From contig NW_021826031.1 in the NCBI RefSeq assembly GCF_006345805.1, positions 434,001 through 498,000 on the forward strand: DNA of 64,000 nucleotides. Direction: 5' to 3'. A program made the position numbers and the translations under genes. A model generated the notes under the pieces. It was given only the letters and a program-made list of their open reading frames with translations, was not told the DNA's origin and did not search any database. Numbering within the stretch: position 1 is the first letter of the stretch; the number at the start of each line of letters is the position of its first letter. The DNA comes from Octopus sinensis (Eukaryota). This document shows positions 15,498 to 58,700 of this stretch, in pieces.

Positions 15498-16430
15498 TTT
15501 ACTGTGCGCCTCGAAATTACATTTTAAAAAGGTATTTTAACGCACTTGGGGCGTATTTTGATATGATAATATAAAAATAACATAATTTGTGCAAAAAATG
15601 AAATCACAAACTCATTCAAATTTCCACAATAATTAAACCACATAGAAACCTCATGAAATAACTGAGCATAAAAAAACGATGCACAACTTGCTTAGAAATG
15701 TAAAACATATTCAACTCCGGATTTTCTTTGCGATATTTTTAAAAGATTTTTTAGGAATCTTGACAAATGCTGAACAATTTATTCTTAACATAAATAAAAC
15801 AGTAAACTCCATTTTGACAGATTAGCTCATATTTTTTCTGATTGTAGTTCATTGATGTAAAATGTTTGACAGAACTGTAAAACAAACACGTGAATATAGA
15901 AATTAACCATAAATTTTGTGGGGAATGTTTAAACAATCAAAAACCAAAATATTCTCTTTTGGTCAGAAAATATAAGCTAAAAATAATGAATAATAAAAGA
16001 GAGTCGGCTGTTGCCCCTGTCAAGGAAAATTGAACGATTTGAATGAGGAGTAAGTACATAAATATCGCCTTCGAATTCGACTGTACAACTCGTTTATCAA
16101 ACGAACTCTGTTTTAAAACGCGGGAACTTAGGGTCTAGAACAGCTTAATTTTTTCCACAGAAAACATTAAGACTACTCATAGGTATTTGCTGGCCAAACA
16201 AGATGAGCGACGAAGAACTTTACAGAAATACTCATAAATCTGAGATTGCATAAATTTATGTTAACAAAGTAGATGCTTTTTAGACATTTCCTAAGAGCCT
16301 CGCAAAAAACGCCAGCCAATCAGGTCGTGGAATCTTATTTCTGCGTACCAAACATAACAAAATATTTCTGTCAAAACATGACAATCAAACTGATGTATCT
16401 GCTGAATAAGATTAAAACATTTTATCTTTT

Positions 16431-18015: not shown

Positions 18016-19625
18016 ATGAACGGAAAAGAATTAGCAGATATAAACACTCAAGTACTGGACTACATTTCAGAAATCACTGATTCTGTGTCTTCCCTTGAGA
18101 TAGCTACCTCACTGAATGTAGAGCACCAGAGAATAGTGGGATCCATCAAGAGTATATCATCCACCGACTCAGAAGTATTGTTTTATAACCACCACAGTTG
18201 TTAAACTATAAAACAGAAAACTATTCTACACTTAAATTGACACCAGAGGGACAACTTGCTTTATCGAATGGAAGTTTGGAGGCCCGAGTGTTTGATCTCT
18301 TTTCTCAGAAGGAGTCATGGACTAGAGAGGAGATCAAGGTTGGTGATGTTAAATTTTCAGACATCGTTCCCTAATGCCACGATTGGACTAAATATAGCCA
18401 TTTCTCTCGGATGGGTTGGAATGGGGGACGACAGTCAGTTCCGGCGAAGAGTCGATGAAATTTCGGACTTGATTCCCCAAAGACTGAGCAGATTGGGACC
18501 CGAAGAGAACGTCGATGACCTGATAAAAAGGAAATTGGTTGCTAGGACAAGAGTGAGTCACATTCTGGTCACCAGGGGACCTGCCTTCAGGAAAGAACTG
18601 ATTAAAGCAAAAACCGATTTAACCAGTGATATGATAGCAGAGTATTCCCTTTATTTGATTCCAGTGGCTCATGGGAATCTTCTGTTCTAAAACCCTTCAA
18701 TTTTGATGCTTTGGGGTTGAGTGTGGGGGGAGGCAGTCTCATGCCTTTGATGAAGGTGAGGACTGCTATTCGATCCATATTCCTGGAAATGGGGTAATGA
18801 TTGTTCGGTTATTCAGGTTCCGGGAAATGGAGACCCATAATTATGTTGAGAATTCATTCTGGAACTTCGACACTTTATTCCAACCACAGAAACATCCCGC
18901 AAGGGATATGCACGACACGTTTTTTCTTTCAGACCCTGCCAATAGCGATGTTCCCGAGGGAAACTATTGGCAGCAAGTCCGGGACGTTCACATGCGTGGA
19001 TATCAATCGGACTGGGATGTGAGGGAGTCTCAGAAGAACGTGTTGAGGACCCACACGACAGCAGTGACTGCACGGACACTTTTTAATTTGGCCGGAAAGG
19101 AGTTTAGACCTTCAAAATTCTTTTCGATTGACCGGGTATTCCGAAATGAGACTTTGGATGCGACCCATTTGGCCGAATTCCACCAAATCGAAGGTTGTGT
19201 GATTGACTACGACATGTCTCTCGCTGATCTCATCGGACTCGTCACTGTTTTTTTCAATAAGTTGGGTTGTCTTCATTTCTGTAATGGCAGGGATCACTGA
19301 CCTCCGATTCAAGGCTGCTTACAACCCATACACGGAGCCGAGTATGGAGATATTTCATTACCATAAACAATTGGATAAATTGGTGGAGATTGGGAATAGT
19401 GGATTGCTCCGAAGGGAGGTTCTAGCACCGATGGGGTTCCCGGATAACGTGAATTGTATTGCCTGGGGCTTTTCATTAGAGAGGTTTGTTTATTCGAGTT
19501 ATGGTAGACCCACCATGATATTGTATGAGATGAAGAACATCCGAGATTTGGTGGGATCGCGAGTTGGGTTGCAGAACATTAGAAGTAGTCCAATTTGTCG
19601 ATTTAACGATCTTACCGGAAATTAA
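18016..19625 (+). CDS. FARSA: Phenylalanyl-tRNA synthetase alpha subunit, 6 introns (22-25 nt), about 489 aa
   Basis: [78 protein letters not shown]. Confidence 0.97.
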
Positions 19626-19723: not shown

Positions 19724-21262
19724 CAGTAAAACCTCTGGTGCTCGCCATTTTTGGGACCGAAGAAAAAATGGCGAGCAATAGAATTTGGCGAGCAATGGAA
19801 ATAATCAATAAATTTTTTGACTTTGAAATTTTGAAAACATCTCGGTTTTCGATACTTTCCGATCATAAGTGATCCTTCCAAGTCATATTTGAGCAAAGAA
19901 ACAAAGAGAATCGAAAGAAATTAAAAGGAAAAAATTAACTAAAAAAATCTTTAATAGTTTTTTTTAATTCAGCCATATTTCTAATAACTGTGTCGATTAG
20001 TTCCAACGAATTTATATCAAAATTTTCATTTTGATAAAAGAATGACTTTATTCTTTTCAACATTTTCAAAGCCTCTTCTAAATTCACATGAGATTCGTCA
20101 TTATGAGTATCTTCATCGTCATATTTTTGTGGGAAAGAATCTCCAGCAATATTAAGGTAATCATCAATTTCATCTATTTCGGTAAATTCATGATTAATAA
20201 AATCATCTTTATCCACCTGGTCCAATATTTTCAAGATATTTACCATTTGATCATAATTATCAATTTCAACAGTTGGTCTTTCGAGTTGATTTTCACATTC
20301 GATCCATTTTGAATGTCCGAAACACTTTGTAATTGTTTTGGTCGTTACTTTTTTCCAGGCAAAATATGTAAAAAGAAGACCGTCTTTTAAGGTTAATTTT
20401 TTATGAGCTTCCAGTGGATTTTCTTCATTTTCAATTTTTTCTAACATAAACTCAAATTTGAGTTTATTAAAAGGTCCTTTGAAGAATTCCATCCAAGTTA
20501 ATAGTTCGGTGTCAATAACAGAATAAGTTAGATAATCTCTTCTTATTGGAGAAAATGGGATCAGTAGACATTATTTTCTCTTTTCCAAGTCTTAAATCGT
20601 TCACAGCCCTTCGAGATATTTTTTTCTTCAAAACAGAAGAAAAAATGTAAGCTATACGGTCCATCGTGAGACTTTTGTTCTCCTCCATGTACGCAATAAT
20701 GCGACGTTTTTCATTAAAAGACAATCTTGTGCACTTACGCATGTTGAATTTAGCGTGGTTGAAACAACAACAACAAGAAGCCCTGCCGCAAGATGAGAAC
20801 GGTATGTTAACATCTCGCTTGGGCCAGCCACATAAGATCAAGACAGAGAGAACATGTTATTAGGAAACTAACTAATCCAGAGGAAGACGTCCCGAACGAA
20901 GACATGTATCTCTGCTCCATCTAATTTTTCTTTTCGAGTGTGGCTAAAGTAGACATCCGGTTCCGCAGTGCTTGAAGAACTTAGTAGTTTTCCGAAGCTC
21001 CTGGGTTCAAATCTCACTGTTATCATTTCGGCGGAAGGTTCCATGCATATTACATGCATTCCGGATTGACGAGTGACGCCGTCAACAGTGGTTAAAATAT
21101 TTTATGAAAAAATAGTTTAACCAAAAAATATTTTTAAAAATTAATGGCGAGATTTAGAAAATGGCGAGCAATAGAATATTTATCAAAATTTACTAGAAAT
21201 TTTTAATTTTTTGAAAAATATGTGGCGAGCAATAGAGGTGGCGAGCACCAGAGGTTTTACTG
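19724..21262 (-). mobile_element. pogo/Tigger-like element, internally deleted
   Basis: TIR CAGTAAAACCTCTGGTGCTCGCCA, TA TSD; HTH-psq start (MRKCTRLSFNEKRRII) and C-terminal DDE_1 remnant (AWKKVTTKTITKCF). Confidence 0.9.
20761..21087. mobile_element. SINE-like insertion containing a tRNA-Ser-like sequence (20934-21025, +)
   Basis: Flanked by GTGGTT direct repeats; (AAC)n at the left end; A-box, B-box, CTTGAAG anticodon-like loop and long variable-arm hairpin. Confidence 0.5.
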
Positions 21263-27170: not shown

Positions 27171-29543
27171 ACCATTTACAAGTCAATTTTGCAGCTGAGA
27201 ACATCATTTTTGCAATCTGGAATTAAATTTGCAGTCAAGAATGGCAATTTTGCATGTAAGAATCCGGTTGCGGTTAGGAAATCATTTTTGCAAATAGTAA
27301 ATGAATTTTGCGACTGGGGAAAACCAATTTTGCAATCAAGAAAATAAATTTGCGGTCATGAAAACCATTTTTGCAAGTGAGAAATTCTATTTTGCAAGAA
27401 ATTTTTATTACAAATAAGAATTGTCAGTTAAATCTTCACATCGAATAACTGAGGGGTAATATCTCTCCACATGATTCGAGAATTCCATTAACTTTTGTGG
27501 AGTTAATACTTCTTTTGCCTCAATTGCAATCCTTTCCAAGATTCTCATTCTGAATTCGGTTATTGACAGTCCTCTGCATTTTTTTTATAATTTATAATTA
27601 TATCCATATTTTCACGAATTCTCTTTTACTTCAGCTTTGAATGAACTCCAAGCAAGTTCTATGGGGTTGATTAAATAAGAATATGGCGCTAGTCTTAATA
27701 ATTCACTATTTTCTCCTGGATTTATTACAGACTCAAGTTGACTGTGAATAGGAGCATTATCAATTACGAATGTTGGATGTGTAACTCCTGATGCATCACA
27801 TTCATTAATAAGTTGCCTAAACCATGTTTTACAGGACTCCCCTGTATATGAGCCTCTTCTGCACTTAAAATTATATATTTGTGACGATGACATTGCAGCT
27901 ATACAATGTAAATTTTGACCCTCTGACTGGGTGCAAGAACAATAGACCGACACCAATTTTTGAACGTCCTTCTTTTACGACGACAAAATAAATTAAAATT
28001 TGACTCATCTATCCAAATTATAGTTCTTCCTTTAGATCTCGCATTCAAAGGACGTGTAAATACTCCATTCTTTTATTTTATTCCTCTGTATTCATGTTTA
28101 TTGTGACTGGCCGAATTGATTTCAATGAAATAAATGTCCATCAAGCCAATTTTTTACTGTATTTACACAAAAGTAACATTGAATTGAGCTTGAATTTTTT
28201 CAGTACATTCGACCAATGAGATCTGGCAATCGCATTCAATCCAAGTTAATAGAGCAGATATAATTTCTTCACTTTTTTACTCCAAATCTTTCCTCCTTTA
28301 GGAAAGTAATTCAATTTTTTTATTTTAATCCAATAATATGCGGTCCTTTCTTTCACTCCAAAGACCTGCATAAAGAGCGCCAATCTCCATCTCTATCGTG
28401 TGGTCTATGATCAATTCCGTTTTTCCATTGAATATTCCGTAATGTCCTCTCCTTGTCTGTTTATGCAAATGTCTTCTGTACCATTTTCTTGTGAATTTTC
28501 GGAGACTTCTCGATTTTGTGTTATTTTTAATTAATTTAAACGCAAAAATACTTTATATATTGTTTAAAACGCATTAATGTTGCGTCAAGGTTTACAAAAG
28601 AATTTGCAAAATTGGAATTTCCTGCTAGCAAAGGTAGTATTCCTACTAGCAAAATCGATTTTCCTAGCCGCAATTTCATTCCCCACTTGCAAAACTTCCG
28701 TTGGCGTCCAATGGTCTGCTTATGGAAGACGAAACTATACGTATCGGAGTGTGTCTTCGACTTGGACTTGAAATCTGCAACCTCACCGTTGTCGCTGTGG
28801 TTTTTTGATTCCTTCGAACGGTTTACACGCATTGTCCTGTAGGAGGAGTGCTGGCCGATTTCCCCGCCACGTCCTCCTCAATGAAGTGGTGAAAAGGGCT
28901 TTGGATTCTGCGGGATTCCATCGACCCTTGACCTATTGGGCTCTGCCGCAGTGACGGAAAGCGTCCTGACGGGATGACTATATTCCCCTTTAGAGGAGGA
29001 AGGGATGTTTTGGATGTAACTTGCGTCGACTCCTTTTCAGATACTGTGCTCACAGGAACAGCCAGTACACCAGGCTACGCATGTGCGCTGGCAGAAGAAA
29101 GGAAGTTGACGAAGTACGCTGTGCTTCCGAAACGTCGTTGAGTTTGTCCCCCTAGCCTTTGAGACCTCCGGTGTGGTTGGAAAGAAGGTAGAAAATCTGT
29201 TGCGGGTTGTGGGAGGAAGAATCTCACAGAATACAAATGACCGGAGGGAGACGAGCTGGCTTTTCCAGCGCATCTCGGTTGCAATTCTTCGCGGGAACTG
29301 CCTCTCTATCCGCAGTGCTTCGTCGTCGGACTAACCCTCAAGTTCACGACATTAATTCTCTATTAATTATATTGTACATTAAAAAAACTTGTTTTACTTG
29401 CAAAACCGATTTTATGACCGCAAATTAATTTTCTTGATTGCAAAATCGATTTTCTTAACCGCAAAAATCATTTCTTATTTGCAGGAATGAGTTTACTGAC
29501 CGCAAATAAATTTCGTACTTGCAAAATAGAGTTGTAAATGGTA
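27171..29543 (-). mobile_element. IS630/Tc1-like element (TACCATTTAC subfamily) with decayed DD34E transposase
   Basis: TIRs (T)ACCATTTACAAGTC / GTTGTAAATGGTA; subterminal TTTGC repeats with about 21-bp period; WIDES, IDNAPIH, LAPYSYLINPIELAWS. Confidence 0.85.
28698..29387 (+). mobile_element. CRE-clade retrotransposon 3' end (zinc knuckle plus RLE endonuclease)
   Basis: LRLGLEIC...HALSCRRSAGRFPRH...DGKRPDGMT...DVTCVDS...FETSG...WLFQRISVAILRGN, poly(A). Confidence 0.9.
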
Positions 29544-30117
29544 TAGTTCACATACATCTTCTTAAATATTCTAGCCCTCTTTGTCTTCAAATTAGTTTCT
29601 CCTTTATAAATCCCATTTAGTTCGTTATTAATCCCATTTAGTTTGATGTTAATCCCATTTAGTTTTCTGCTAATCCGATATTGTTTGATGTTAATCCCAC
29701 TTAGTTTGATGTTAATCCCATTTAGTTTTCTGCTAATCCGATATTGTTTGATGTTAATCCCACTTAGTTTGGTACTAATCCCATTTAGTATGGGAAATGG
29801 TATAGTCAGGATATCCTATTCTCAGTTGTTATCTCTGTGTCTAGTAATTCAATCCTCTGATATTGAATGTTAGAGTAGAGAACCAGATAAGATTAGTCTA
29901 ACGTAAGAAAGAGTCATGATAGTTATCTAAAGCTAATCACTAAGGAACAGACACAATCTCTAACGGGCAGGAAGTGAGATACTTATGATTGTTCTTGCCC
30001 GGTATTTATAGGATTGTCGATCATGATCCTGTTTATGCTGCTCATAATAAAGTTGACCTACTGAGGATAGGCCAAAAAATTCTCTAATTAGTAATATGTC
30101 CTAAACTCGTGTATATA

Positions 30118-31589
30118 CACCCCTCGTCACCGAAAACCGGACAAGCCATTTTTTATGATTTTATTAATTAAATACGAAAAATCAAAAACTTACGCTTAAT
30201 ATTTTTACTTAATAATAATAATTGTGTAATAATTATTAATTATACTATTATAGAACTAATATTTAAAGCAGAATTTCAATTTACTTAAGACATGTAAAAC
30301 CGGACAAAACTTTTATAGATCTAAAAGTCGTTGAAAAGAAGCTAAAAATGTATAGTCAAAGAAGAAGTCACCTTTCAGATTTCCTGAAAGGACAAATTAT
30401 TGCATTTTATAATCATAATATGACTTATCAAGTGATTTCTGCAAGTATAGGAGTCCCAAAATCAACTGTATCAGATGTGATTCAGAAATTCAAAAAACTG
30501 GATCAATTAACATACATTCGGGAACTGAAAGAAAGAAAATATTGATAGAGGAAGAAATTTTGATTTTAGTAGAACTATCAAATAATACCCCTCATAAAAG
30601 TGCCAAAACTCTTAGCATCGAAATTAAAACTATGTTCAAAAAAAATTTCAACAAGAATAGTATCTCGAATTTTAAATAAGAAAGGATTATATGGTTGAGC
30701 TGGTAAAAGAAAACCTCTTTTATCCACAAAAAATATAATTTTAAAACGTGAAATTACGAAATTATTTTTAAGCATTTCCGACGAGACATGGAAGTCGGTA
30801 ATTTTTATTGATGAATGGTCTTTTGATATTTTTAATATCAATAAGCATCAAATAGTGTATAGAGAAAATGGTTCTGCATACAAAAAATGCAATATTATCC
30901 CAACTGTAAAATTCGGTGGCGGAAAAGTAATGGTCTGGGGCAGTTTCTCGTATAACGGAGTCGGTAATCTTGTTTTTATTGATGAAATTCTTAATAGCGC
31001 AAAATATATTAATATTTTATCTAATAATATATTCGAATGTGCCAAAAAATTCGGGATAGACTTATTTATTTTACAACAGGATAATGCACCTTGCCATAAA
31101 TCTAAAATGATCTAAAATGATACAAGATTATATTAAAGAAAAAAAACATTATTTAACTTCAATGGCCTGCTCGATCACCGGATCTAAACCCGATAGAACA
31201 TCTATGGACAGAAATGAAGAGAGAATTATCAAAAAATGTAGTCAAAAACAAAAATGAACTAAAGGAAAAATTAACAGAAATATGGAATAATATATCACCA
31301 GAATTATTGAAAAAACTAGTAATGTCTATGAAAAATAGATGTTATAAATTTTCAGTGCAAATGGTGGACATATTAACTACTAAATGACTTGTTTTTATTT
31401 TGTCCGGTTTTTACATGTCTTAAGTAAATTGAAATTCTGCTTAAATATAAGTTCTATAATAGTATAATTAATAATTATTACACAATTATTATTATTAAGT
31501 AAAAATATTAAGCTTAAGTTTTTGATTTTTCATATTTAATTAATAAAATCATCAAAAATAGCTTGTCCGGTTTTCAGTGACGAGGGGTG
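30118..31589 (+). mobile_element. Tc1 element with about 195-bp IR/DR-type TIRs; frameshifted transposase
   Basis: TIR CACCCCTCGTCAC..AAAACCGGACAA with TA TSD; FIDE, QQDNAPCHKS, WPARSPDLNPIEHLW. Confidence 0.92.
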
Positions 31590-31785
31590 TATTTAACAAT
31601 TTGTTAGCCATGTTGTTGATAAACTTGTAAAATATTTTTTTATAAAAAATTAGTAATTTAATACAATAAAGTTCCACCATACATTTAATACAGTGAACAT
31701 AACAATTTAACTGAATTTTGAAAGGATTCAATTTGTCTAATATATTTGATTATTATTTAAAAATAAAATATACCGACGTGGCCTT

Positions 31786-34255: not shown

Positions 34256-35202
34256 TTAACTGTTTTTGGAGCAGGTATCACAGCAAAGAAGCTGGTTCCT
34301 CAAAGTGAACTTTTTATTTCGGAGAGAATGGTTACAGGAAAAGCAGTTGAAGCAGTCGGTATGCCAATTTTCGCCGTCTACATTGATATAACTGGAACCA
34401 CCCAAAGCTAAATTTGATAAATGCGGTCAATGCAATTACCCGATATAATCTGCTTGCACTTTGAACATTTTTTACCAAATGACTTGTCATAGCAAGAAAT
34501 GCAGTAGAAACTGGTGCCATTCATAGAAAAATTTTGATTCGAAATATTTCTACCACAAGTGGTACATACAAAACATTTTTCATGAAACTTTTTTTCGTTT
34601 GAAGTAACAATTTTGCCGTCAAGAAACTACACAGGTTTTTCACTCCTGTACCTTTTTGCATCCGTGACAAACCCCTGCTTTCTTTTGATGACACTGCGTG
34701 CAGGTAGGACCGTTTTCTGTCACGTAAAATCTATCTGTCCCAATGGAATTCCTGCATTTTGAACATTTGAAGCATTTTTCGTGATAAAGTTTGTCATTGT
34801 ACGTCATCTGGGATTCTCCTGAGAAATATTCGTATCACTCAACCTTCAGTGAATTTTTTATTGCAGCCACTGCACGACTTTGCAAATTTTTTTCGGTAGC
34901 ATGCATTACAGCAAAACTCGTTTTCCTTCTCCAATGGGTAAAATGAATTTGTGTCTATGGGACTTCTGCATATTTTACAGCGGAAACAGGTCGCATGAAA
35001 TGTAGAAGTTTTATAATTTAAAGACTATGAGATTTAAGTAAAAAAATTGTACGGATTCTCCAGGAGCTATTTTGGAATTGCACATACTACACTTTGTGGC
35101 GTATTTTCTGTCAAAGCATGACAAGCAAACTGATTGTTCGTCAATAGGTACATAGCTTTTTCCTGCCAACGATATCGAACATTCATTGCAAACTCTGCTC
35201 AT
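34256..35202 (-). CDS. FHL2: Four-and-a-half LIM domain protein, copy 2, 278 aa
   Basis: Same four introns and open frame as copy 1; differences are largely synonymous. Confidence 0.92.
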
Positions 35203-36141
35203 TTTACTTTGCGCCTCGAAATTGCATTTTAAAACGTATTTTAACGCATTTGGGACGTATTTTGATATGATAATATAAAAATAACATAATTTGTGCAAAA
35301 AATGAAATCACAAATTCATTCAAATTTCCACAATAATTAAACCACACTGAAACCTCATGAAATAACTTATCATAAAAAAACTATACACAACTTGCTTTGA
35401 AATGTAAAACATATTCAACTCCGGTTTTTCTTTGCGACATTTTTAAAAAATATTTGAGAAATCTTGCGAATGCTAAACAATTTATTCTTAACATAAATAG
35501 AACAGTTAACTCCGTTCAGACAGATTAGCTCATATTTTTTCTGATTGTAGTTCATTGATGTAAAAAGTTTAACAGAACTATAAAACTAACACGTGAATAA
35601 GGAGATTAAATTAACCATAAATTTTGTGGGAAATGTTTAAACAATCAAAAAACCAAAATATTCTCTTTTGGTTTTTAAAAATAAAAGATAGAGTCGACTG
35701 TTGCCTCTTTCAAGGAAAAGTGAACGATCTGAATGAGGCGTAAGTACATAAAAACAGCCTTCGAATTTGACTGTACAACTCGTTTATCAAACCAATTTTG
35801 TTTTAAAACGCGGGAACCTGGGGTCTACCCGCTAAGGAACTAGAACAGCTTAATTTTTCCACAGAAAACAATTGAGACTACTCATAGGTATTCGCCGGCC
35901 AAAAAAGATGAGCGACAAAGAACTCTCTAGCATAAATTTATGTCCACGAAGTGGATGCTATTTAGACATGTCCTAAGAACCTCGCAAAAAACGCAAGCCA
36001 ATCTTATTTCTGCGTACCAAACATAACAAAATATTGTATCTGCTGAATAAGATTACGACATTTTATCTTTTTAGATGCGTAGATGAACTTAATTGATTAT
36101 TTTCTTCCATGCCAGTCGATATTTCTTTTCAGAGTGATAAT

Positions 36142-38095: not shown

Positions 38096-38653
38096 ATGAT
38101 AGGACTTAGTACTGTGCTTCGCAAAATAAGGAGAAAGGAGAAGCAATTGAGGGTCTTGGTGCTAGGACTGGACAATGCTGGAAAAACAACGATAATGAGA
38201 AAGTTGTGTGACGAATCTCTGGACACTGTCGCACCTACTTTGGGCTTTAATATTGTCACGATTGACTACAAAGGCTACAAGTTGAACATATGGGATGTCG
38301 GAGGACAAAAGTCTCTTCGTTCTTACTGGCGAAACTATTTTGAAAAAACTGATGTTGTCATTTGGGTGGTAGACTCAGCCGACAGAGCCCGAATGGTGGA
38401 TTGTGCGACCGAACTAAGCTCTTTGCTCTTGGAAGAAAGATTGTTGGGGGCCTCCCTTTTGGTTTTTGCCAATAAACAGGATATTGAGGGGTCTATGTCG
38501 TGCAAGGAAGTGGAAGGGGTCCTCAATCTCGCAAACATGCAATCACATAACTGGAGTATCCTCCCATCTTCTGCTTATACGGGACTCAATTTAGTCGAGG
38601 GAATGGACTGGATTATTGATGACGTGTCTTCCAGGATATTTTCTCTTTATTAA
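38096..38653 (+). CDS. ARL2: ADP-ribosylation factor-like protein 2, intronless, 185 aa
   Basis: [45 protein letters not shown]; colinear with ARL2 without insertions. Confidence 0.97.
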
Positions 38654-39477: not shown

Positions 39478-41342
39478 TCGATTTGAAGACCCAATCTAAT
39501 GATATATAAAATCAACCAAACAAACCCGCACTTGATTAAATTATTATTTAAATAAAATTTATTTCATATAATCTATTAATAAAGTTTATTAACTTAATAA
39601 GATTTATTATGACGAAATTAGTTAAATCACAAATAATTTCCCCCGGTCCAACCAAGCAGAGTTTCACAACCCAAATGCTTTTTTTCGCGGAAATTGAGAA
39701 TACACCTTCCACAATCACCCTGTCCCCACCACCATGATCTACTTCATCAAAAATAGCGTTAACTGAAACCCTCGAAATACCTGAAATTGTGAATTACTTA
39801 AATATGCCGTCCACCAGGCGTCATAATTCGCTCTGTCCTGCACTTTCCGATTACTGGAGACCGTCTTTTTTTAAACATTCCCTAAATTATCAATACCAAG
39901 TCATTAGACTTTTAGTTAGGTGAAAAAAGATGAAATTTCTTGACTACTTCTAAAAAATCATTCACATAGACCAAATGCTCGCAGCATTGGCACGATAGTT
40001 TGAATAAAAAACGATTATGTTGTACATCACTGTTGTATCTGATAATAATCTGACAGATTTAACAGAACAAGTTTTAGAAAGCATGGAAGAATGTAGAAAT
40101 TCTTCTGACGGTGTTCAAAATAAAAAGATGAAGATTAGTGAATTGAAATAATCAGTTTTAGACATTGCTCCAAGTTGGTTAAAAAAATTTTATTGCTTCA
40201 AACAAAGTTTATTCAAAATTGGTGATTATTATGTTGCGAGGGATGACAGGTAATTTTACAGGTGCCAACAGAGGATTTCGCTTACAATCGTGCCCGGCCC
40301 TTGGCCGAAATCTAACCTCAATTACTTTTATGTAATCTAATCAATGACTTTTACATCGTCTTATGTAATCTGACGGTAGAATAAAATATCACGTGTAATC
40401 TGCTGTGATCAATGAAAATGCCAGATGGAAAATAAAGAACGAAAAGAAGACGAAGTGCGAGGAACAAAGCCAGTAAGGACAATTCAGGCATTTCACATAT
40501 ATGGACAATCAAAAATCGGGAAATTTTGAATTAACTGCACGCAAATGTAAATCATTCGTCCATTTGGGCTGCATAAAATGAGTAAACCTTGCGCTGAGAT
40601 GCTGTCGAGTTGACTGTGCCCCCCTTGTAGTGGAAAGAAGATCTCCAGGTGGAAAAAAATCGCCCATCCAAATTTTACACTGCCACATAGAAGAAGAAGA
40701 ATATGGTTTATTTAATACAATAGCTCCAAAAGAAAAGTGGCCGAGGAATTAGAGCTTAGGGGGCTTGATAACGAGAGCCACGAAGGTCTCAACTTCGGTT
40801 TTGCCCCGGGAGACTGTCTTATCTCCCTCAGCGAATTCGAGTTTTTGCCAGGATCGCGTCTATCGTGTCAACACTCCGCTCATGCAGGTCCTCCAGCGGA
40901 CTGCTGAGCTCCAGGCCGAATGCCAGTTTGATGGCAAATCGTCTGGTTTTTTCGAGTTTGGCGATTAGAAGGTCCCTTTCATCAGTTTGGTACCAGCCCT
41001 CCGAACCATAGATTATTAGTGGCTGAACACAAGTCTGGTAGATGTGTAGAAACGTTTCTGCGCTTAGACAAAAACGCCTCAGTCCTTTTAGGATTTTCGC
41101 TCCTTGTTTCCGCTTTGCATGCACATGGGGTTTGTATGACCCGGTGGGGTCTATAGTTACTCCCAGGTAACGTAGGTTCTTTGATATAATCAGGTTCCCA
41201 TAATCCTCGAAAGTCGGTTTTTTGTCACGACCCATTGAAATCCAACAAATGGTACTTTTGTCCCGAGCGAGATTCAAGCCTTTACCATTGCACCAGATTT
41301 CAAGTTCCTCCAAGTACCGTTCTATACCATTTCCTATACTAA

Positions 41343-41629
41343 ATGGGATTAACGTCAAACAAAGTGAAATTAAGGTCAAACTATGTGGGATTAACGTCAA
41401 ACAAAGTGGGATTAAGGTCAAACTATGTGGGATTAACATCAAACAAAGTGGGATTAAGGTCAAACTATGTGGGATTAACGTCAAACAAAGTGGGATTAAG
41501 GTCAAACTATGTGGGATTAACGTCAAACAAAGTGGGATTAAGGTCAAACTATGTGGGATTAACGTCAAACTAAATGGGATTAAGGTCAAACTATGTGGGA
41601 TTAACGTCAAACTAAATGGGATTAACACC
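41343..41629 (+). repeat. Tandem 21-bp array GGGATTAACGTCAAACAAAGT / GGGATTAAGGTCAAACTATGT (about 14 units)
   Basis: Direct reading. Confidence 0.95.
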
Positions 41630-41911
41630 AAAAATTCTTTTTTTAAAATTTTATGTTAACCATATCTGCTCTTTTTTAAAAGCTCCCCTTCGGATTTTAC
41701 AGTAAATGAGTCCTAGATTTGAGATGCATCCAATTATATTGTTCTCGTTGTTCTCGGGATATTGAGTTCAAGTGCTGTTTTTTTCCAATCTCCACCTGAT
41801 TCTGCAGCTGAAATTAAATGTATTTATTTCTATGCATTTGATTTTTCTCTTCCAATGATTTACGTGGCATTTTTATTTGCTGCGTCGAAATATAATATTT
41901 ATAATAAACGT

Positions 41912-42112
41912 AATCCACTTAGTTTGACGTTAATCCCACATAGTTTGACCTTAATCCCATTTAGTTTGACGTTAATCCCACATAGTTTGACCTTAATCCC
42001 ACTTTGTTTGACGTTAATCCCACTTTGTTTGACCTTAATCCCACATAGTTTGACCTTAATCCCACTTTGTTTGACGTTAATCCCACTTTGTTTGACGTTA
42101 ATCCCATTTAGT
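41912..42112 (-). repeat. Inverted 21-bp array (about 9-10 units)
   Basis: Reverse complement of 41343-41629. Confidence 0.95.
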
Positions 42113-43759
42113 ATAGGAAATGGTATAGTCTGCTCCAGGACAACCTTCTTCTGTGTCGGGGTCCCCACATCGAGACATCCGTAATCAAGATATCATCCGC
42201 GTAGATAATTAGTCTGCTCGTAGGAAAATGTGGTTTCGGGACGTCGGCCAGAAATATATTGAAGAGCAAGGGGCTGAGAACCGATCCCTGAGGAACACCT
42301 CTCCTCAGATTCACGGCCTTCGATAACAAATTTCCACAACGAATGAACGATTTTCTCTCGCACAAGAAGCCCTTTAGCCATCTGACAGTTTTTCGCCCAG
42401 CACCCAACTCCGCTACTTTATCTAACAACCCCAAGTGCCAGACACTGTCAAAGACATTGCAGACGTCCAAGCAGACCGCCGTTAGGCAGGCTTTATGGAG
42501 TTTGGCCCGAGACAGTTCTTCCTCAAGAAGCGAGAAACAGTGACCGGTTGATCGACCAGGTCTAAAACCCCACTGTTCTTCCGCGAGTATATTATTTTGT
42601 TCCACGTAAGCCGATAAACGATTGAAAATAATTCTTTTTATTATCTTCGACGTTGTGCAGATAAGGCTAATTGGCTTATAACTTCCTGCCTGCGTATTTG
42701 GTTTTCCAGGTTTTGGGATCATTCGGACGATTGTTCGTTTCCAGCTAGATGGGACGTGACCATTGTCCCAACTGGCATTGAATAGTTTTACCAGAATACG
42801 AAGCAAGCATCCGGGTGCCTTCTTGAACACCTCCATAGGGATGAAGTCAAATCCAGGAGCGTTGTTCTTGCAACCTCTGATTGCTTCGAACGTCTCTTCC
42901 GTGGTTATTTCCCTGCACAAGGGTCCATCCAAAACAAATTTTGAGCGGGAATTTCGGGTCGACTCCTCGAATATTTTCAGAGGCAGGATTGACGAAGGGT
43001 CCACCTCCTGAATCCCTGCTAGCTGCTGGCGGAAGACCTCCGGGACTTCCTCAGTAGGAACAAAGCCTCCATCCACCGATTTAAGAATGATTTCTTCACC
43101 TTTCGCCTCCGTCCCGTTCATTATTTTGTATAGTTTCCAGAATTTAGGATTTTTCTTGTTGAGTTTTAAGCATTCTCTCTTCCATGCCTCATCTGTGTTA
43201 GCTTTAGTCAGCTCGTCGATCCGACTCTTCAGGGTGTTGATTCGGGCCTTTAGACTTCCAGAGTCCTCAGATTCGAAACACCTTCTTCTTTTGCTTTCCA
43301 GTCGCGCTTTGTCTCTGACTAGCTCAGATAGTCTAGTTTCGGTTCTCTTCGCGCAAGATCCCTGGGATTTCATATGTTTTTTAGAAGCAAATCTGTCCAG
43401 AAAGGCCACCACATGCTTTCGTATGGCCATTTACACTGCCACATATTGACCATATTCTTTTTAAGATTTTGAACCTCTGGAAAGCCAAGAAGATCCCAGT
43501 AAAAATTCCTAAATGAGTAAGAATTGCCGCATTGATCACCCACTGTTTTCTGAGAGTTGGGAATCCTGGCTATACTTATACGTACTCTGAATACCCACGA
43601 CGGAATCTGATAACAATAATAAAGAAACAAACTCTCGGCTCAATCTAACCGGGAAACTGAAAGGAAGCATAATGAATTTTAGCAGTCATAACATAAACGG
43701 AATACTTGAGCAGCCACTTAATGTCAATGAGGAGAATACACCAATTACGGCTTCAACAA

Positions 43760-44500: not shown

Positions 44501-47500
44501 CTAAAGTTTAAAGTCTACGGTTATTTTCCATCCTTGCTGTAACTCTTCAATCACAGAATGGTCGTTGAGAGAAGAAAGGTCTCCAAATTCGTTACTCCCA
44601 CGCACGATTTGACGGAGTATCCGTCTTATGATTTTACCCGAACGAGTCTTGGGCATATTGGGAGCAAGCTGAACATGTTCCGGAGTAGCAAATGGACCAA
44701 TCGTATTTCTAACTACAGAATCGAGTAAAAATACAACCTTCTTGTTTGATTTCTTTCTCGAGTTGATGAGTAAATTGAGCGCCCTAAAATGTCTTCCAAA
44801 TGAAACAACCTGATGTAGTGAAACAAAGCAGTAAACACAACTTCCTTTTACTTCATGAGGAGCAATGATTGCTGCAGCTTCGACGACACTGGGATGTTGT
44901 ACAATGGCAGATTCGATGGTACTTTTGTCGAAGTGGTCGCAGTTTTTTTTGAGATAATTAAAATTAATTAATTTTTTAGTGAAAAATAGATTATTTAATT
45001 TATAACCCTCTATCAATAATTTAAATGGTTATTAAAATTATTTAAAAATTTATTTAACCAATTTAGTCATTTTAGTACGCGGCATCCAAATTCCAGGACT
45101 GTAGAAGGAATTTATGTCTTTTACAATCTGTGCAAAAGATTCCTTATAGTTCTGTATTTGTTTTCGCCACATAAATTCTGAAAAAATAACTAACTAAAAA
45201 AACCGGTACTTTTGTCGAAGTGGTCGCAGTTTTTTTAGGCCTTTTAAAAAATCTAATAATTTTTGAGGTGGAATATATTATATTTTATTTAAGTCGCTCT
45301 ATCAATAATTTAAAATATTATTAAATTTTTTACTAATTATTTTCTAATTTTGTTTAATATTATGGCGAGCATGTACCTAATATTGATATAAACAGGCACT
45401 ATAGGTCACATGGAAAATTCTGTTGTGGACTTATGCAACATCAAATTCCGACAGCTCCCAATAAGTAAGGAGGATGCAGTGCATTTCTGTTAATAATATT
45501 TTAAATTATTGATAGAGCGACTTAAATAAAATATAATATATTCCACCTCAAAAATTATTAGATTTTTTAAAAGGCCTAAAAAAACTGCGACCACTTCGAC
45601 AAAAGTACCGATTCGATTTCTATTGTACTTAAGAGATGTCCTGAGACGTTGAGCATATCGTCGATTCGTCCTGTAATCCAGTAATGCCCGTCTTCATCCC
45701 GAAAAACTCCTGGGAATATTCAGATTAAACATAACCATCTCCCGTTATATAATAGCCAGGAATTCTGTCGAAATATGTCTCTCTAAATCGATCATAGTCT
45801 TCGTAAATATTGCGACAAACGCCCGGCCAGGCTTGTTTGATAGCCTAAATGAAATTAAGTTGTAATGTTACCAAATATCCATCCGCTTTGCCTATAATCT
45901 CGTTTCCGTTTTTGTCCAAAACTGCTGGGACGATTCCAAAAAACGGAAATGCCTGTAAATATTTCCGAAAAATATCTACAGCGGATCCTGGCTTGGTTTT
46001 GAAAGATGGAAGTGGAGTCAAAACTGGGCCGGACTACGAAAATTACTTTTAATCACTCACAGTTTCGGTCTGCCAATATGTGTCCACTAAAGCACATCTT
46101 GATTTACCAACAACTCGATGATACCACTCCCAAACAATGGGATTTATTGGTTCTCCAGCTGTACCGATTACTCTCAAGGACTCTCTTGTGCTTGTTCTAC
46201 TCATAGTAAGAGCCATTAACTCTGTGATGTATTTTTCGTCGTATCCCATTAGTGATCGTATAGCAGTGGGGGCAGTGTAAAATTGAGTAACTTTATATTT
46301 GTCAATTATTCTCCAATATCTGCTTACGTCGGGAAAAGTCATGGTCCCTTCATACTACGAGGTAAGACCATAGTTATTTACCAGCACACTCGTAGCGCGG
46401 TTTAGAAGAGGGCCATAACAAACGAAGCTATGTCCCGTGATCCATCCAAGGTCGGCAGTACACCAAAAAATGTCTTCCGGTCTGTAATCAAAACAAAATT
46501 TAAAAGTAGTGGATGCATAGAGCATATAACCACCAACGGTGTGCAGAATTGCTTTAGGAATGCCAGTTGAACCACTAATTCATAAATATTCAGAGATGCC
46601 TAGTGTGAAGCATAAATAGAGGGTCTTCAGAATCCATCCAAACCGGCTCACAGCTTGTACTTGCGCTTTCCATTACTTCGTCCCACGAAATATCTCTTTC
46701 TGGGTGGATTCTATACTAATATTCACAGAATCCAGATTTTATACGTCAATTGGAAATGGTCTACTCCCAATCTCTTTTTTGGCCTTATTATTGGCGGTTG
46801 ATGATAAATGTTGTTTCCATATTACTTTTGAAATTAAATATCCCCTAAAATATAATTTTTGTAACTACTGTTCTTTACAGATGTCGATTCCTTCGTCGCA
46901 TATATTTTTAAGGTTGATGAGTTTGTTTCCTCTCCAGAATCCATCTAATTTAAATATTTAAAATATTTTTAACCCGCTGTTATGACAAGTTTGGGTTTCG
47001 CTGTAAGAAAGCGAACGGAAAGTGATTTGGAAGAAAATCCAGCAAACTAAAACTAAAGAAATCATTAATCACAATGATCGAATGTGTAACTCCCAGCCTG
47101 GCACAAGCCATCATTGCGATGATCAGTTCAGGAATCACAGGCATATAAATTGAAACCGTGTCATTTTGTTTGACATCTAAATATATTCAAGGTGTGGCAA
47201 TATTGCACAGAAAACCACAAATTGAAAATTTTATATTGCTTACCATTATTCTTGAGCACATTTGCAAGCTGGCAGACTTTTTGATGGAGTTCAAAATACG
47301 TAAGACTAGATGTGTCATTTACGTCGTTCCCTTCCCTGAACAATACGCATTAGATATAACCAATAATATGCAATTTGGTTGCCATGTCCTTCCATAATAT
47401 GCTTATCCAAACAATTGAAAGATATGTTTGTTTGTGCCCCTTTGAACCATTCAGTAAAAATCGGCCCCTTCTTTACGTCGAAATTCCATTTAACTTTTTT

Positions 47501-47782
47501 ATTCTCTTCCAGGGACTTCCAATAGAATTGCTCTGCAATCCGCCCCCAAAAAATTCCTGGATGAGATATGGATTCTGTGTACATTTTTTGGTACTCTTCT
47601 ATTCCAGATATGTGACTTTTCTTTGTCACTCGTTCTTCCGGGGAGTACCATTCTTGACTTGAATGTACTTTGTGGGATTTTCGATTAAATTTAACATTTA
47701 TTCCCGCACAATTTCCGATTGTATTTCTTTCAAACAATTGGTTATTTTGTAAGATGAATTTTCTAAGTGTTGGAAATAACAT
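44501..47782 (-). CDS. ACSS2: Acetyl-CoA synthetase, about 15 introns (one GC-AG), exon interrupted by a Merlin element
   Basis: [15 protein letters not shown]|[67 protein letters not shown]; no other lesions seen. Confidence 0.93.
44918..45609. mobile_element. Composite Merlin (IS1016-like) non-autonomous element
   Basis: TIR GGTACTTTTGTCGAAGTGGTCGCAG at 44918, 45205 and inverted at 45585-45609; perfect 8-bp TSD GATTCGAT; Merlin-like peptide remnants [12 protein letters not shown] (+) and [18 protein letters not shown] (-). Confidence 0.9.
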
Positions 47783-52906: not shown

Positions 52907-54531
52907 CAGTGCTGGTAGAAAAAAACCGGTTTGGCAGTTACTACTTTTTTTGGCGGATAGCTATTAATTTTCTAATGAAATAAAGAGTTTGAAGTTGATT
53001 ATATGTACAATCTTTTTTACTTTTAAAAAATTTCAATAATCGGCGGAAATTTTAAAAATTTAAATTTTTGCTTGTGAATAAAAAACCGGTTTAACAAAAA
53101 GAGTTAACAAAATCAACAGTTAATATGTTGTGTGGTATCCTCGATTAATAAATAGCTCGTATGACCTGTTAGGCATACTATCAATTAACTTCTGAATACT
53201 TTCAGACGGCAATTCGTTCCAAATTTTTGTTAATTTGACTTCCAGATCCAGTTTATTTTTGTAGGATCTAGAATACTTCTGCTTCATCTTTCCCCAAACA
53301 TGTTCCATTGGGTTCAGTCTGGAGATTGCGGAGCCCAATCAAAAATTGGAACTTTATTTTCTTCAAAAAACTTGGTTGTCAATGCAGATTGATGACAGGG
53401 AGCCAAATCTTGTTGGAAAGTGAACTGATTTAGTCCCATTTTTCGCGCCGAAACGAACAAATTATTCGTTATTACATTTATATATTTAGCGGAATTGAGC
53501 GTTCCATTAACAAAAACTAATTGCCCACTCCTTGATAGGAGATACAGCCCCAACCATAACACCTGCCCTCCACCAAATTTTACTGTCGGCGTAATATGGC
53601 TCAATTCATAACGTGAACTTTTTTTTCGATAACTGTATTGCCTTTTTTAGTATGAAAAATCTCAAAGATGCTTCATCAGAGTAAATAATAGTTTTCCATG
53701 CGTCATTGTTCATCCGAATAAAAATTTTTGACAATTCATATCTTTTTATTATGTTGTTCTTCGAAATCAACGGTTTACATTGACATCTCTTCCGAAGAGA
53801 AAATTGGAATTTAAATAAGTTCCAATTTTCTTTCTACAGACACTCTTACCGGTTAAATAATTTATTTCATTCCTCAGCGTGTTAGAAGATTTTTTGGATC
53901 GCACTCAACAAGATGCAATAAAATTTCAACGTCTGTTTTTTGAAGCTTTTTAGGACGTCCAGAACCAGGAATCCTATCAATAGTTCCATATTTTTTGAAT
54001 TTCGAAGAAAATCTCCGATTGTCGATTTTGGAGTATTTAGATGATCTGCGATATCTTTTATCGTCCAATTTAACTCATAAAGAGCAAAAATCTTCCCTTT
54101 AATTATTTTATTTAACATTTGCTTATAAAACTAAAAATTCAACTACTAAAATATCACTCAATAATGAAACCGGTTTTTTATACACACTCTAAAATTTAAA
54201 TCTTCAGAATTTAAAACGATTAATGGAATTTTTTATAAATAAAAAAAATTATAAATCTAATCAACTAAAAGAGTTCAATTCAGTTAAAAATACGCAAATC
54301 TTGGACAACGGTACCGCTTCGTACCTATCGCTGTGGAGACTTCTGGGGTAACCGGCCCTCTTACGACTTCTTTCATCAGAGAAGTCGGAGGAAAAGTTGC
54401 TAGGCGACGTGGGAGCCTCGAGAAGTGTCATGGTTATTCCAACAAATTGGAATAGCTGTCGTTCGCGGCAATGCACACTCCATCATGCGTGCAACCGCAA
54501 GTGCCTTTTAATCATTGACTAACTTATTTCA

Positions 54532-54644: not shown

Positions 54645-54839
54645 TAGTTTTATTATTTTTTTTAGGTCTTATAGGTCATATTTTATGCCGTTAGGTCATA
54701 TTATTTTTTTTAGGTCATATTTTTTTGTTAGGTCATATTTATTTTATTAATCATATATTTTTATTAATCTTTGTTTAAATTTTGACAATAACACGTTTTC
54801 ACCGTTTTGGTATTGGCCGCTTAAATATTATAGATTTTT

Positions 54840-55936
54840 ACATGCCGAAACAAAAGCAATCCAACAATCAAAAGTTAAATAAAATAATTAAACGATACCC
54901 GTCTGAATTTCAGATTGATTCAGCTGGACGTTTATTTTGTTTGAAATGCTCAGTTTTTGTTAATTTTACGAAAACGTTTAATGTGGTGTAGCACAGGGAA
55001 GCTACCCGGCATAAAAAGGAACAGACAAAATTTCAAACGCAACTCAACACTCTTCAGAAACTTGAAGCAAAGAAAAATTTCGGAATTTGCTTAGTCTAAA
55101 TGATGACGAAGGCGAATATACCTCTTTACAAAATAAGAAATGAACACTTTATTAATTTTTTTAATAATCTCGGATTTACTGTTCCCAGCGAAAGTTGGTG
55201 CAGAAATATAGTTCCAGATTTGCAATATCAATTGATTGAAATGCTTAAAACAATTATTTCTGGAAAAGATATATTCATACTTGTTGATGAAACGGAAATC
55301 AATAAACAGAAATTTGTTAACGTTCTTGTGGGACTATGAAGTTCTGAAAAAATTTATTTATTAAATTGTTTGGAAATTGAAATTTGTGATGCATCTGCAA
55401 TTTGTAGAATTGTGGATGACACAATTCGAATTTATGATATAAAAAGGGAAAATTTTTTATTATTTATTTCTGATGCTGCCCGTTATATGACTTTAGCAGC
55501 GAGTACATTGAATATATTAAAATGATTCATATAACTTGTTTTGCTCATAATGCTGTTAGCTCTGAAAATTTGGAGAAATCAGAAAAATGCTGTTAGCTCT
55601 ATTATTGATGAAATCAGAAAATGTCAAGAAAAATTTTACACAATTAAAGATGTAATTGAATTCATTGATTCCGTTAATTTTGGTGAGGATAATTGTGACA
55701 TTAACAAGTATTTTTTAAAGCGGATAAGTATGTTACCATGGACGAATATTAAAAATGCTAGAATTTCTAGTATTTCTCCAGAAACATTTATTTACTTATG
55801 GAAATGTCCTTCAACATCAATATCTGCAGAAAGAAGCTTTTCTATGCTGAATAAATTGCTCGAAAAGGATAGAAACTTCAAGCCAGAAAATATTAAATAT
55901 TATATGATGCAATATTATAATAAATTCATTGATTGA
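54840..55936 (+). pseudogene. CGGBP1-like hAT transposase, decayed
   Basis: LFCLKC...HK zinc finger, KANIPLYK, ILVDET, LFISDAARYM, TSISAERSFSML. Confidence 0.75.
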
Positions 55937-56102
55937 AATGTTTAATTTTTTCATATTTTCAAATTCAGAATATCTAAAAATCAAAATTCGATAGATCATA
56001 TTTTGATTTTTTAGGTCATATTTTAATATTTTTAAGTTATATTTTAGAATTTTAAAGTCATAAAGTCATATTTTTTACGGTCATATTTAGTCATATTTTT
56101 TA

Positions 56103-56306
56103 CGGACTCGTTGGGATCTTTCGTGGCAACCACGAGCTTAGATCCAAGGCGGCGGAGAAACGATAGCGTCTGCGGGCCGATGACTCCAGAGGTTTCCACC
56201 GCGACTGCAGTGAATTGGTGATTCTTTGCCAGGACCCGGTACTTCTTCTGTTTTGTTAGTTCCGCCTGCTTTGCAACTGAGCCCGGTTCCGCAGCGGAGA
56301 CAATTA
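56103..56306 (-). mobile_element. CRE-clade fragment
   Basis: AAEPGSVAKQAELTKQKKY...AVAVETSGVIGP. Confidence 0.75.
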
Positions 56307-56830
56307 GATTCTTGGCGAGGTTGATGAAGTTGATGTGTATGAGGCTTGCGGGTGGTTAATTCATGGAAACAATTTTCCCCGAACTGAGGCAAATTTGTGC
56401 CTGTTGCAAGATCGAAACTTGTTTTTCAGCAACAGAAAGAATAAACGCAGCTACTGCAACTCATCCAAGAAGACCTTCGATCACCTTGCTACCAGATGTA
56501 GACGAATGCTTAACGGCTCCTACCATAACGAAGTGGTTAAATGCTTTCATTTACATCTATGTCGCCAATATGGAATTCAAAAGTCGACAAAATTAAAAAC
56601 CCATTCAGTCCAATCTGTTACCACCAATGAATTTGTGGAAATCCGAGTCAATACAAACTTTTCGACTGATAATGCTATCCCGAATAACAAGTCAGACGTA
56701 TTTGTTCATGACAAATCGAGCAACACAATTACTCTTATCGAGGTGGGGATCACTTCACAAAATTGTCTTAAGCAGATCGAAATGGAAAAGTTCCATAAAT
56801 AAGACTTCGTGGCGAATTAACTGGGAGCGT
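56307..56830 (+). mobile_element. R4/NeSL-like RLE retrotransposon 3' fragment
   Basis: WLIHGN..EANLCLLQDRN...DHLATRC...HNEVVKCFHLHLC...NNKSDVFVHD...LIEVGIT...EKFHK. Confidence 0.75.
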
Positions 56831-56879
56831 GGCGAATTAAAATTAATAAAGTGTTCATTTCTTATTTTGTAAAGAGGTA

Positions 56880-57400
56880 TATTCGCCTTCGTCATCATTT
56901 AGACTAAGCAAATTCCGAAATTTTTCTTTGCTTCAAGTTTCTGAAGAGTGTTGAGTTGCGTTTGAAATTTTGTCTGTTCCTTTTTATGCCGGGTAGCTTC
57001 CCTGTGCTACACCACATTAAACGTTTTCGTAAAATTAACAAAAACTGAGCATTTCAAACAAAATAAACGTCAGCTGAATCAATCTGAAATTCAGACGGGT
57101 ATCGTTTAATTATTTTATTTAACTTTTGATTGTTGGATTGCTTTTGTTTCGGCATGTAAAAATCTATAATATTTAAGCGGCCAACTACCAAAACGTGTGA
57201 AAACGTGTTATTGTCAAAATTTAAACAAAGATTAATAAAAATATATGATTTAATAAATATAAATATGACCTAACAAAAAAAATATGACCTAAAAAAATAA
57301 TATGACCTAACGGCATAAAATATGACCTATAAGACCTAAAAAAATTAATAAAACTATTAAAAAATATAATAATAGTTTATTAATTATAGAAATAGAAATA
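56880..57400 (-). repeat. Inverted duplicate of the hAT left end (52066-52089 plus 54645-55100), without the MITE and Tc1 insertions
   Basis: Near-identical reverse complement. Confidence 0.9.
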
Positions 57401-58700
57401 AATCTACGCCCTATAATCTTGCTAAACACCTTACGGAAACTTTTGGGATTAGTTACACTGACCGAATAAGAGAACAAGTGGACAACTATCTATCCCCGAG
57501 TCATAGTGGATTTAGGACAGGAAGATCCACCGCCGATGCTGTCTGGGCCCACAAGTGGTACTGCGCTTTCACCCAGAGATACAAAAGTGCAACAACAGTC
57601 CTGGGAATAGACCTGTCTAGGGCCTTTGACACGGTACGCCGTGGTCTACTCCTCAAAATACTGGAACAATTCCTGGACCCTGACTCTGTCAATATGATAA
57701 GAGTACTACTATCGAACACAAAGCTCAAGGTGCGGGTCGGCACGGCGTTTTCCCGTGAATTCACGTGCAACGTCGGTACCCCTCAGGGAGACGCCCTCTC
57801 GCCGTTGCTATTCGTGATCTATCTGGAGACGGCACTACGAGACCTTCGAAAATTCTATGCTGGCAATATCGTCGAAATTGTATATGCAGATGACGTCGAC
57901 TTCGTGTCAGACGACAAATCGGCCTTACTTCGACTCCTTGAAGTGGCACCTGCTGAGCTGAACAGATGGTTCCTTAAAATGAACGTTGGAAAAACCGACA
58001 TCGTTGAAATCATGAGGATGGAGAGCAGCTCAAGTGAAGCCTGGCGCAAAACGAACAAACTCGGTCTCTACTTGGGGACGGCCATGATATTGTCAGAAGA
58101 AAGGCTCTCGCTTGGGCCACGATGAACAAGATAAAGAAAGAGTGGATCGGCAAACGACGACTCTGTACGTCACTTCGTCTGAAGATGTATGAAGCCTTTG
58201 TCAAACCAATCCTGACATATAATTCGGCGACCTGGGGAATGTCTAGTACTGAACAACGTGGACTCGATTCTTTTCACCGCAGGCAACTTAGATCCCTACT
58301 GGGATTGAACTGGCCTATAAGAATCAACCAGGAATCGCTATACAATAGATGCAGAACTGGCCCTCTGAGTGTGGAAATCGTCAATATGCGGTGGAGGTTA
58401 TTTGGCCATATTCTACGAATGGACATGCTTGCCCCAGCTAACATAGCAATGGAGGGCTACTTCCTGAAAGAGGGATCGAGCTTCCGTGGACGTCCACGTG
58501 TTACGCTTCCGGAAACACTTGACGGAGACCTGAAATGTGTGAAGAAAAGGCTAAGGAGTGGTGAGGATCTGGACGAGCTGAGGAAACTCGCTCACGACAG
58601 AGGAGGTTGGAGGAGGCTGGTTCAAAGGATTGTTTTTAATGCTGCACGAGTAAAATTATAACTAATATGATTCTACGTATGTTGCAAATAATAATAATAA
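57400..58700 (+). mobile_element. 5'-truncated RTE-like LINE
   Basis: SGFRTGRST, IDLSRAFDTV, GTPQGDALSPLLF, YADD, LFGHILRM, GRPR; one frameshift; (AAT)n tail. Confidence 0.88.

Follow-up and report, generated by a model that had tools for sequence, protein, structure and literature searches.

A young, composite Merlin-like MITE splits a coding exon of ACSS2 in the ultra-compact genome of a probable dicyemid

Merlin DNA transposons are recognized by a target-site duplication (TSD) of 8 to 9 bp, by terminal inverted repeats (TIRs) that start with 5'-GG and range in published elements from 24 to 462 bp, and by an IS1595-type DDE transposase (PMC8101967). In Aureococcus, one Introner family carries both of its splice sites, and each insertion adds 12 nt, made up of 4 nt and an 8-bp TSD (PMC9860276). 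Insertion of a transposable element (TE) into an exon is itself a known class of event, of which spontaneous miniature inverted-repeat transposable element (MITE) and P-element mutations are ordinary examples. Here we describe a 64,000-nucleotide stretch of DNA (contig NW_021826031.1, positions 434,001 to 498,000; hereafter the window, with positions counted from its first letter) in which a 692-bp, Merlin-like MITE lies in a coding exon of an otherwise intact ACSS2-type acetyl-CoA synthetase gene. We think it reasonably probable that this is a recent insertion allele with loss of function, produced by an active Merlin-like MITE family and probably polymorphic. The element and its flanks are laid out as follows.

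44918-45609, no strand assigned: composite non-autonomous DNA transposon of 692 bp, 73% A+T, with no open reading frame (ORF) of note
44910-44917: TSD copy GATTCGAT, downstream in the gene sense, 8/8 identical
45610-45617: TSD copy GATTCGAT, upstream in the gene sense, 8/8 identical
45205-45609: complete inner MITE of 405 bp, with arms at 45205-45324 and 45490-45609 around a 165-nt loop
44918-45204: half unit of 287 bp from a related but diverged MITE, a left half with no right-hand TIR
44918-44949, plus strand: 32-nt terminus GGTACTTTTGTCGAAGTGGTCGCAGTTTTTTT, present also at 45205-45236 (plus strand) and 45578-45609 (minus strand)

The first-pass annotation of this DNA had described a composite element of 692 bp with a perfect 8-bp TSD, inserted so as to split the protein sequence STIEIES/AIVQHP (the slash marks the insertion point). 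The size, the TSD, and the split were all found as described, and the element is indeed composite, with the complete 405-bp MITE joined to the 287-bp diverged half unit. The two arms of the inner MITE are identical at 120 of 120 nt. In the half unit, a terminal arm of about 138 nt, which is about 78% identical to the inner MITE arm, is followed by 149 nt of unique sequence. The inner MITE has no TSD of its own, its flanks being AAAAAACC and GATTCGAT, and we therefore take the whole 692 bp to have moved as one piece via its outermost ends. Nesting of the inner MITE into the outer unit was ruled out for the same reason.

All three element termini are identical at 32 of 32 nt, and the sequence adjoining them is only about 78% alike. 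This identity suggests that the 32-mer is the part that the transposase needs, that is, a putative transposase-binding end. About 90 nt inward from the terminus there is another conserved box, CTCTATCAATAATTTAAA. The terminal 25-mer, GGTACTTTTGTCGAAGTGGTCGCAG, occurs at three sites in the window, 44918 (plus strand), 45205 (plus strand), and 45609 (minus strand), and the chance expectation is none. Beyond these three termini, no further copies of the element were found in the window by an exact search, by a search allowing 3 mismatches, or by blastn with the whole element, and a scan of metagenome and prokaryotic genome collections for the element pattern returned 0 matches. The element is shorter than 800 bp and non-coding and has both TIRs and a TSD, as is expected of a MITE. 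Its A+T content of 73% compares with 72% for introns and 59% for exons. The element is young: the inner arms are identical, the termini are identical, and the host gene is unblemished.

Set beside the published Merlin elements, this one has an 8/8 match between its TSD copies, ends of the form GGTAC...GTACC, long TIRs that fall within the published range, and a small, AT-rich, non-coding body. It differs in consisting of one and a half fused units and in encoding no transposase. No DDE_Tnp_IS1595 domain was found among the ten window ORFs of at least 150 aa that were scanned (the search took in neither shorter ORFs nor the remainder of the genome), and no autonomous partner with the element's ends was seen in the window. 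The first-pass annotation had called the element Merlin outright; the 8-bp TSD and the GG termini agree with that name, and the IS1595-type transposase that would prove it did not appear among the scanned ORFs. "Merlin-like MITE" is a fair label, in which "Merlin" is an unproven attribution drawn from the TSD length and the GG termini only. Judged by its ends alone, the element may instead have Mutator-like (MULE) parentage, with hAT or P less likely. We set hAT parentage aside, as the ends do not show the YARNG pattern and nothing in the element resembles the hAT-like ORFs of the window.

The element interrupts the host gene at the following positions.

44501-47782, minus strand: coding region of the ACSS2-type acetyl-CoA synthetase, 16 exons when the site is empty, with a product of 715 aa counted from the first in-frame ATG
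44810-45709, minus strand: split exon of 200 nt, with 100 nt upstream (45709-45610) and 100 nt downstream (44909-44810) of the element, the TSD counted once
45576-45578, minus strand: first in-frame stop (TAG) on read-through, 10 codons into the element

The gene model was obtained by spliced alignment against three animal orthologues, each of which gave an identical model. Its introns, fifteen of 24 to 29 nt and one of 67 nt, are all GT-AG except for one GC-AG intron (46599-46575). The 715-aa empty-site product is 55% identical to Aplysia ACSS2 over 668 residues, with 11 gaps. Every adenylate-forming motif is present in it and the gene carries no other lesion, which bears out the earlier statement that the rest of ACSS2 is intact. 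The product has the full architecture of the ANL superfamily of adenylate-forming enzymes, with an N-terminal ACAS domain, an AMP-binding domain, and a C-terminal domain, and its best database matches carry PF16177, PF00501, and PF13193. The C-terminal part aligns to residues 466 to 643 of Salmonella Acs, with the A10 lysine motif, PKTRSGK, conserved.

Normal 26-nt introns bound the split exon on both sides (45735-45710 and 44809-44784). Deleting the element together with one TSD copy restores the conserved motif ...STIEIES/AIVQHP..., and the empty-site sequence then reads ...GAAATCGAATCTGCCATT... across the junction. The insertion point corresponds to the bond between S534 and A535 of Salmonella Acs (GHRLGTAEIES/ALVAHP), upstream of PKTRSGK. 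The insertion lengthens the assembled sequence by 700 nt, and the predicted result is the loss of residues 598 to 715. With these 118 residues would go most of the mobile C-terminal domain, and with it the catalytic lysine motif. The insertion disrupts the reading frame while the rest of the gene is intact. A TE sitting inside an ancestral intron was ruled out, since the exon-level ORFs of other animals are continuous at this point and the 26-nt introns on either side are undamaged. Matches that would show an empty site or a spliced junction were also sought in a 5.8-billion-protein collection, which lacks the species' own proteins, with full-length ACSS2 and the empty-site-exon ORF as queries; no near-identical match was returned, and the best matches of both queries were only about 52 to 66% identical and came from other animals. 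An exact look-up of the neighboring ARL2-like ORF gave no match.

In the course of events that we favor, a young DNA transposon of the cut-and-paste kind, lacking a transposase gene, entered a 200-nt exon of ACSS2 at its middle, the gene being otherwise intact. The element consists of two related MITE units fused head to tail, and a transposase from another locus presumably mobilized it by acting on its two outermost ends. The assembly would then have happened to capture a recent null allele, whose status is probably polymorphic or heterozygous. Within this reading, a less likely alternative is that the insertion is fixed and the gene dispensable to the parasite; ACSS2 is non-essential in mice. 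As in ordinary exonic TE alleles, the TSD is fresh, the TIRs are identical, a stop comes prematurely, and the gene is otherwise intact. There is no material difference from those alleles, and the ultra-short-intron host is the only unusual context. The first-pass annotation had offered three readings, an element tolerated as a long intron, a germline-limited insertion, and a fresh null allele, and had headlined the first; the evidence favors the last.

The host, an animal whose introns are about 26 nt long, is probably a dicyemid, judging from its introns, GC content, repeats, and nearest relatives. The standard genetic code reads all genes of the window cleanly, the GC content is about 35%, and the TEs include long interspersed nuclear element (LINE) reverse transcriptases, Tc1/mariner elements, and others. 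A ciliate origin or a non-standard code was ruled out on these grounds, that is, the clean reading of genes by the standard code and the presence of LINE reverse transcriptase ORFs. The nearest ACSS2 relatives are from molluscs and other bilaterians, not cnidarians. Introns this small are known from two groups of animals, dicyemids and myxobolid myxozoans, and the splice signals of Dicyema japonicum are reduced to GTa and AG (PMC13644364). The D. japonicum genome is 67.5 Mb with a GC content of 36.7%, 49% repeats, many LINE ORF2 copies, and a mean intron length of 38 bp; its assembly, which is haplotype merged, drew on pooled animals of 1.24% heterozygosity (PMC6736024), a point that bears on the allele reading preferred here. 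The window fits D. japonicum better than it fits Henneguya, which has 29% GC and few TEs. Merlin transposases are unusually abundant in Octopus bimaculoides, with 191 sequences (PMC8101967). Dicyemids have octopuses as their host group, and horizontal transfer is therefore a possible source of the element.

To describe splicing in this genome, we assembled 33 homology-supported introns from four window genes (ACSS2, FEN1, PheRS-alpha, and LIG4). All but one (32 of 33) are 22 to 32 nt long, and the remaining one is 67 nt. Their donors are GTT in 15 cases, GTA in 12, GTG in 4, GTC in 1, and GCA in 1; the acceptors are TAG in 21, CAG in 6, and AAG in 6. Thus, GTC and GTT donors and AAG acceptors are in real use here, as had been claimed. 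The sole non-GT donor belongs to the GC-AG intron of ACSS2 (46575-46599, minus strand; GCATCTCT...AATTAG, 25 nt). The sole long intron, that of 67 nt (47177-47243, minus strand), has the most canonical donor, GTAAGC, which hints that stronger signals may be needed for longer introns in this genome.

Against this background, we weighed the possibility that the element is spliced out of the RNA as an intron of about 680 nt, from a GT in the entering TIR to an AG 4 nt before its exit, in the manner of a nascent introner. We regard this as improbable. The sites concerned are these.

GT starts at 45608, 45600, 45594, 45591, and 45585, minus strand: potential donors within the entering TIR (45584-45608), at element positions 2, 10, 16, 19, and 25
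44922-44923, minus strand: candidate acceptor AG, in CAAAAG/TACC, 4 nt before the element end

The positions given for these sites in the first-pass annotation proved exact, and so did its frame arithmetic, by which four of the five donors keep the frame. Joined to the AG at 44922-44923, donors 10, 16, 19, and 25 add 7, 9, 10, and 12 stop-free codons, respectively, and the donor at position 2 adds 13 nt and breaks the frame. The termini are identical, so the scheme is independent of orientation, as had also been said. However, such pairs occur at chance level. When TIRs were shuffled with the GG start kept, at least one in-frame, stop-free GT/AG pair was present in 65% of trials and at least four were present in 11%.

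Scores from a position weight matrix (PWM) were similarly unfavorable to splicing. The PWM was built from the 33 introns with the invariant dinucleotides ignored, and exonic decoys scored clearly apart from real sites. Only one donor in the TIR was strong, that at position 2, which ranked at the 82nd percentile of real donors but breaks the frame. The donor at position 25 was average, at the 45th percentile, and those at positions 10, 16, and 19 resembled decoys. Position 25, CAG/GTTTTTTT, would be the most plausible donor, and the scheme would retain 4 nt, the 8-bp TSD, and 9 to 24 nt of TIR. The proposed acceptor scored -7.0, below 33 of 33 real acceptors and like a decoy, with 88% of exonic AGs scoring as well or better. 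In the predicted fold of the sense-strand RNA, the entering TIR and all of the candidate donors are paired within a 124-bp perfect stem with the other arm of the inner MITE (minimum free energy, -282.6 kcal/mol versus -131 for shuffles; z = -18.9). The candidate intron, at 663 to 686 nt, is outside the host range and about 25 times the normal length, the longest of the 33 introns being 67 nt.

We also considered what a spliced product would look like, using an AlphaFold model of the C-terminal 188 residues of ACSS2 (40-sequence alignment; mean pLDDT of 77, with values of 79 to 95 around the site). In the model, the insertion point falls between S70 and A71, in the middle of the helix formed by residues 65 to 73, which has an invariant glutamate and directly follows the A8 loop. 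Therefore, the 7 to 12 extra residues would split a conserved helix beside that loop and would probably be harmful. On the other side, the TSD re-creates ...IES ahead of AIVQHP, so the duplicated codons for these residues would regenerate part of the helix sequence.

The comparison with Introners is also divided. As in Aureococcus, a TIR DNA transposon with an 8-bp TSD lies in coding sequence and has a lower GC content than exons, its A+T content being close to that of introns. The exit AG lies 4 nt from the end of the element, so that 12 nt would be retained there, matching the 4 + 8 nt added by that family (PMC9860276). In contrast, the defining property of Introners is the presence of many similar copies spliced as introns from unrelated genes, and here there is one copy, known from DNA alone, with no second copy in the window. 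The terminal donor of the element would add 13 nt, host introns are about 25-fold shorter than the element, and the donors lie in a predicted hairpin. Introners are nearly unknown in animals, with finds in only two animal groups. Taken together, the chance-level, PWM, fold, and length results give no support to the introner-like reading that had been headlined, and by these sequence and model comparisons splicing appears weakened, not refuted.

A second way to keep ACSS2 intact would be removal of a germline element from somatic DNA, which we rate as more doubtful than splicing. Recombination between the 8-bp direct repeats that flank the element would yield a 700-bp circle and restore the exact ORF; excision by a transposase is the other conceivable route. 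We know of no animal in which precise excision of intragenic sequences occurs. The likeness to ciliate internal eliminated sequences (IESs) and to dicyemid circles is that a TE-derived segment interrupts a coding exon between short direct repeats and that its size of about 700 bp is the modal size of the circles. The difference is that published dicyemid circles look unrelated to TEs and excision of the element is hypothetical.

Chromatin elimination and extrachromosomal circular DNA have been reported in dicyemids (Noto et al. 2003, as cited in PMC6543705). An assembly of Dicyema sp. includes 3,220 "circular" contigs, whose median length is 702 bp and whose lengths show a periodicity of 10.44 bp (PMC6543705). 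The element plus one TSD (44910-45609) amounts to 700 bp, or 67.05 turns of that periodicity, but the chance that a size falls on a periodicity peak is about 0.3. Moreover, most of the published circles are unique sequences, they have motifs in common with mitochondrial minicircles, and they are not under-represented in read coverage, which argues against diminution (PMC6543705). After ordinary cut-and-paste excision, the TSD and a footprint stay behind, so that the frame would not be restored. The comparison also presupposes a host identity that we infer. The 700-bp match to the dicyemid circles is thus a coincidence in size, one that keeps DNA-level removal alive at a low probability.

With RNA-level and DNA-level removal combined, we judge removal of the element unlikely, and slightly more so when ACSS2 is also required to stay functional. 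An assembly artifact, such as a repeat collapsed or mis-joined into the gene, is very improbable: the genome is repeat rich and the window holds several other TEs and long inverted repeats, but a perfect TSD exactly at matching TIR ends, with a join that restores a conserved motif, is the signature of real transposition, and the window has no Ns.

Several points weigh against the loss-of-function allele that we favor. The strong conservation of ACSS2 implies selection on the gene, which would make a homozygous null surprising. About one-third of predicted dicyemid introns are at least 30 nt long (PMC6543705), and longer introns are therefore handled by these animals. Somatic DNA rearrangement is also reported in dicyemids (PMC6543705). 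The PWM has little power, as it was built from few introns (33) in a genome with very degenerate splice signals. A real acceptor of FEN1, CTCAAAAG/A, resembles the GACAAAAG/T of the element, and AAG acceptors are real in 6 of 33 introns. Given these caveats, a recent null allele of an active MITE family is still the reading that we prefer.

The rest of the window contains intact genes and many repeats. FEN1 (3768-5084, minus strand; 10 introns of 22 to 29 nt), DNA ligase IV (9384-10570, minus strand), PheRS alpha (18660-19607, plus strand), and the intronless ARL2-like GTPase (38096-38653, plus strand) are all intact, with no TE insertion. Rfam and tRNA scans of the window gave no matches. Two Tc1/mariner-like elements (30112-31595 and 52993-54266) have long TIRs, of 155 nt with 95% identity in the first and of 100 nt with 81% in the second, and both contain transposase-like ORFs. 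There are hAT-like C-terminal ORFs at 12993-13853 (minus strand), a pogo-like ORF at 19938-20856 (minus strand) that matches DDE_1 weakly, and further DNA transposon remnants elsewhere. At 54645-57356, a large inverted-repeat structure with arms of up to 233 nt at 100% (54927-55159 and 56839-57071) has ends unrelated to those of the ACSS2 element and adjoins LINE reverse transcriptase ORFs at 56308-58661. Arrays of a 21-nt tandem repeat, read as GINVKQS-type heptads, lie at 41322-41632, 41915-42128, and 29471-29870, and two of the 21-nt arrays are inverted beside a LINE reverse transcriptase ORF at 42108-43430. Near-identical sets of LIM domain ORFs about 20 kb apart (15309-15536 and 35014-35307, both minus strand) suggest a recent segmental duplication.

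As it stands, the insertion in ACSS2 is an ordinary event, in which an active MITE family struck an exon. It is of some value as a sign that cut-and-paste transposons still move in this ultra-compact genome of a parasite, and also as a marker for population work. If the RNA or the somatic DNA were found to be repaired, the significance would be much greater. Splicing of the element would bear directly on how intron length is policed by a spliceosome that is tuned to introns of 22 to 32 nt with GT/AG-only signals. Precise somatic excision, if true, would tie the long-puzzling 700-bp circles of dicyemids to transposons. In either case, this would be the first birth of a TE-derived intron, or the first IES-like precise excision, to be caught in a dicyemid.

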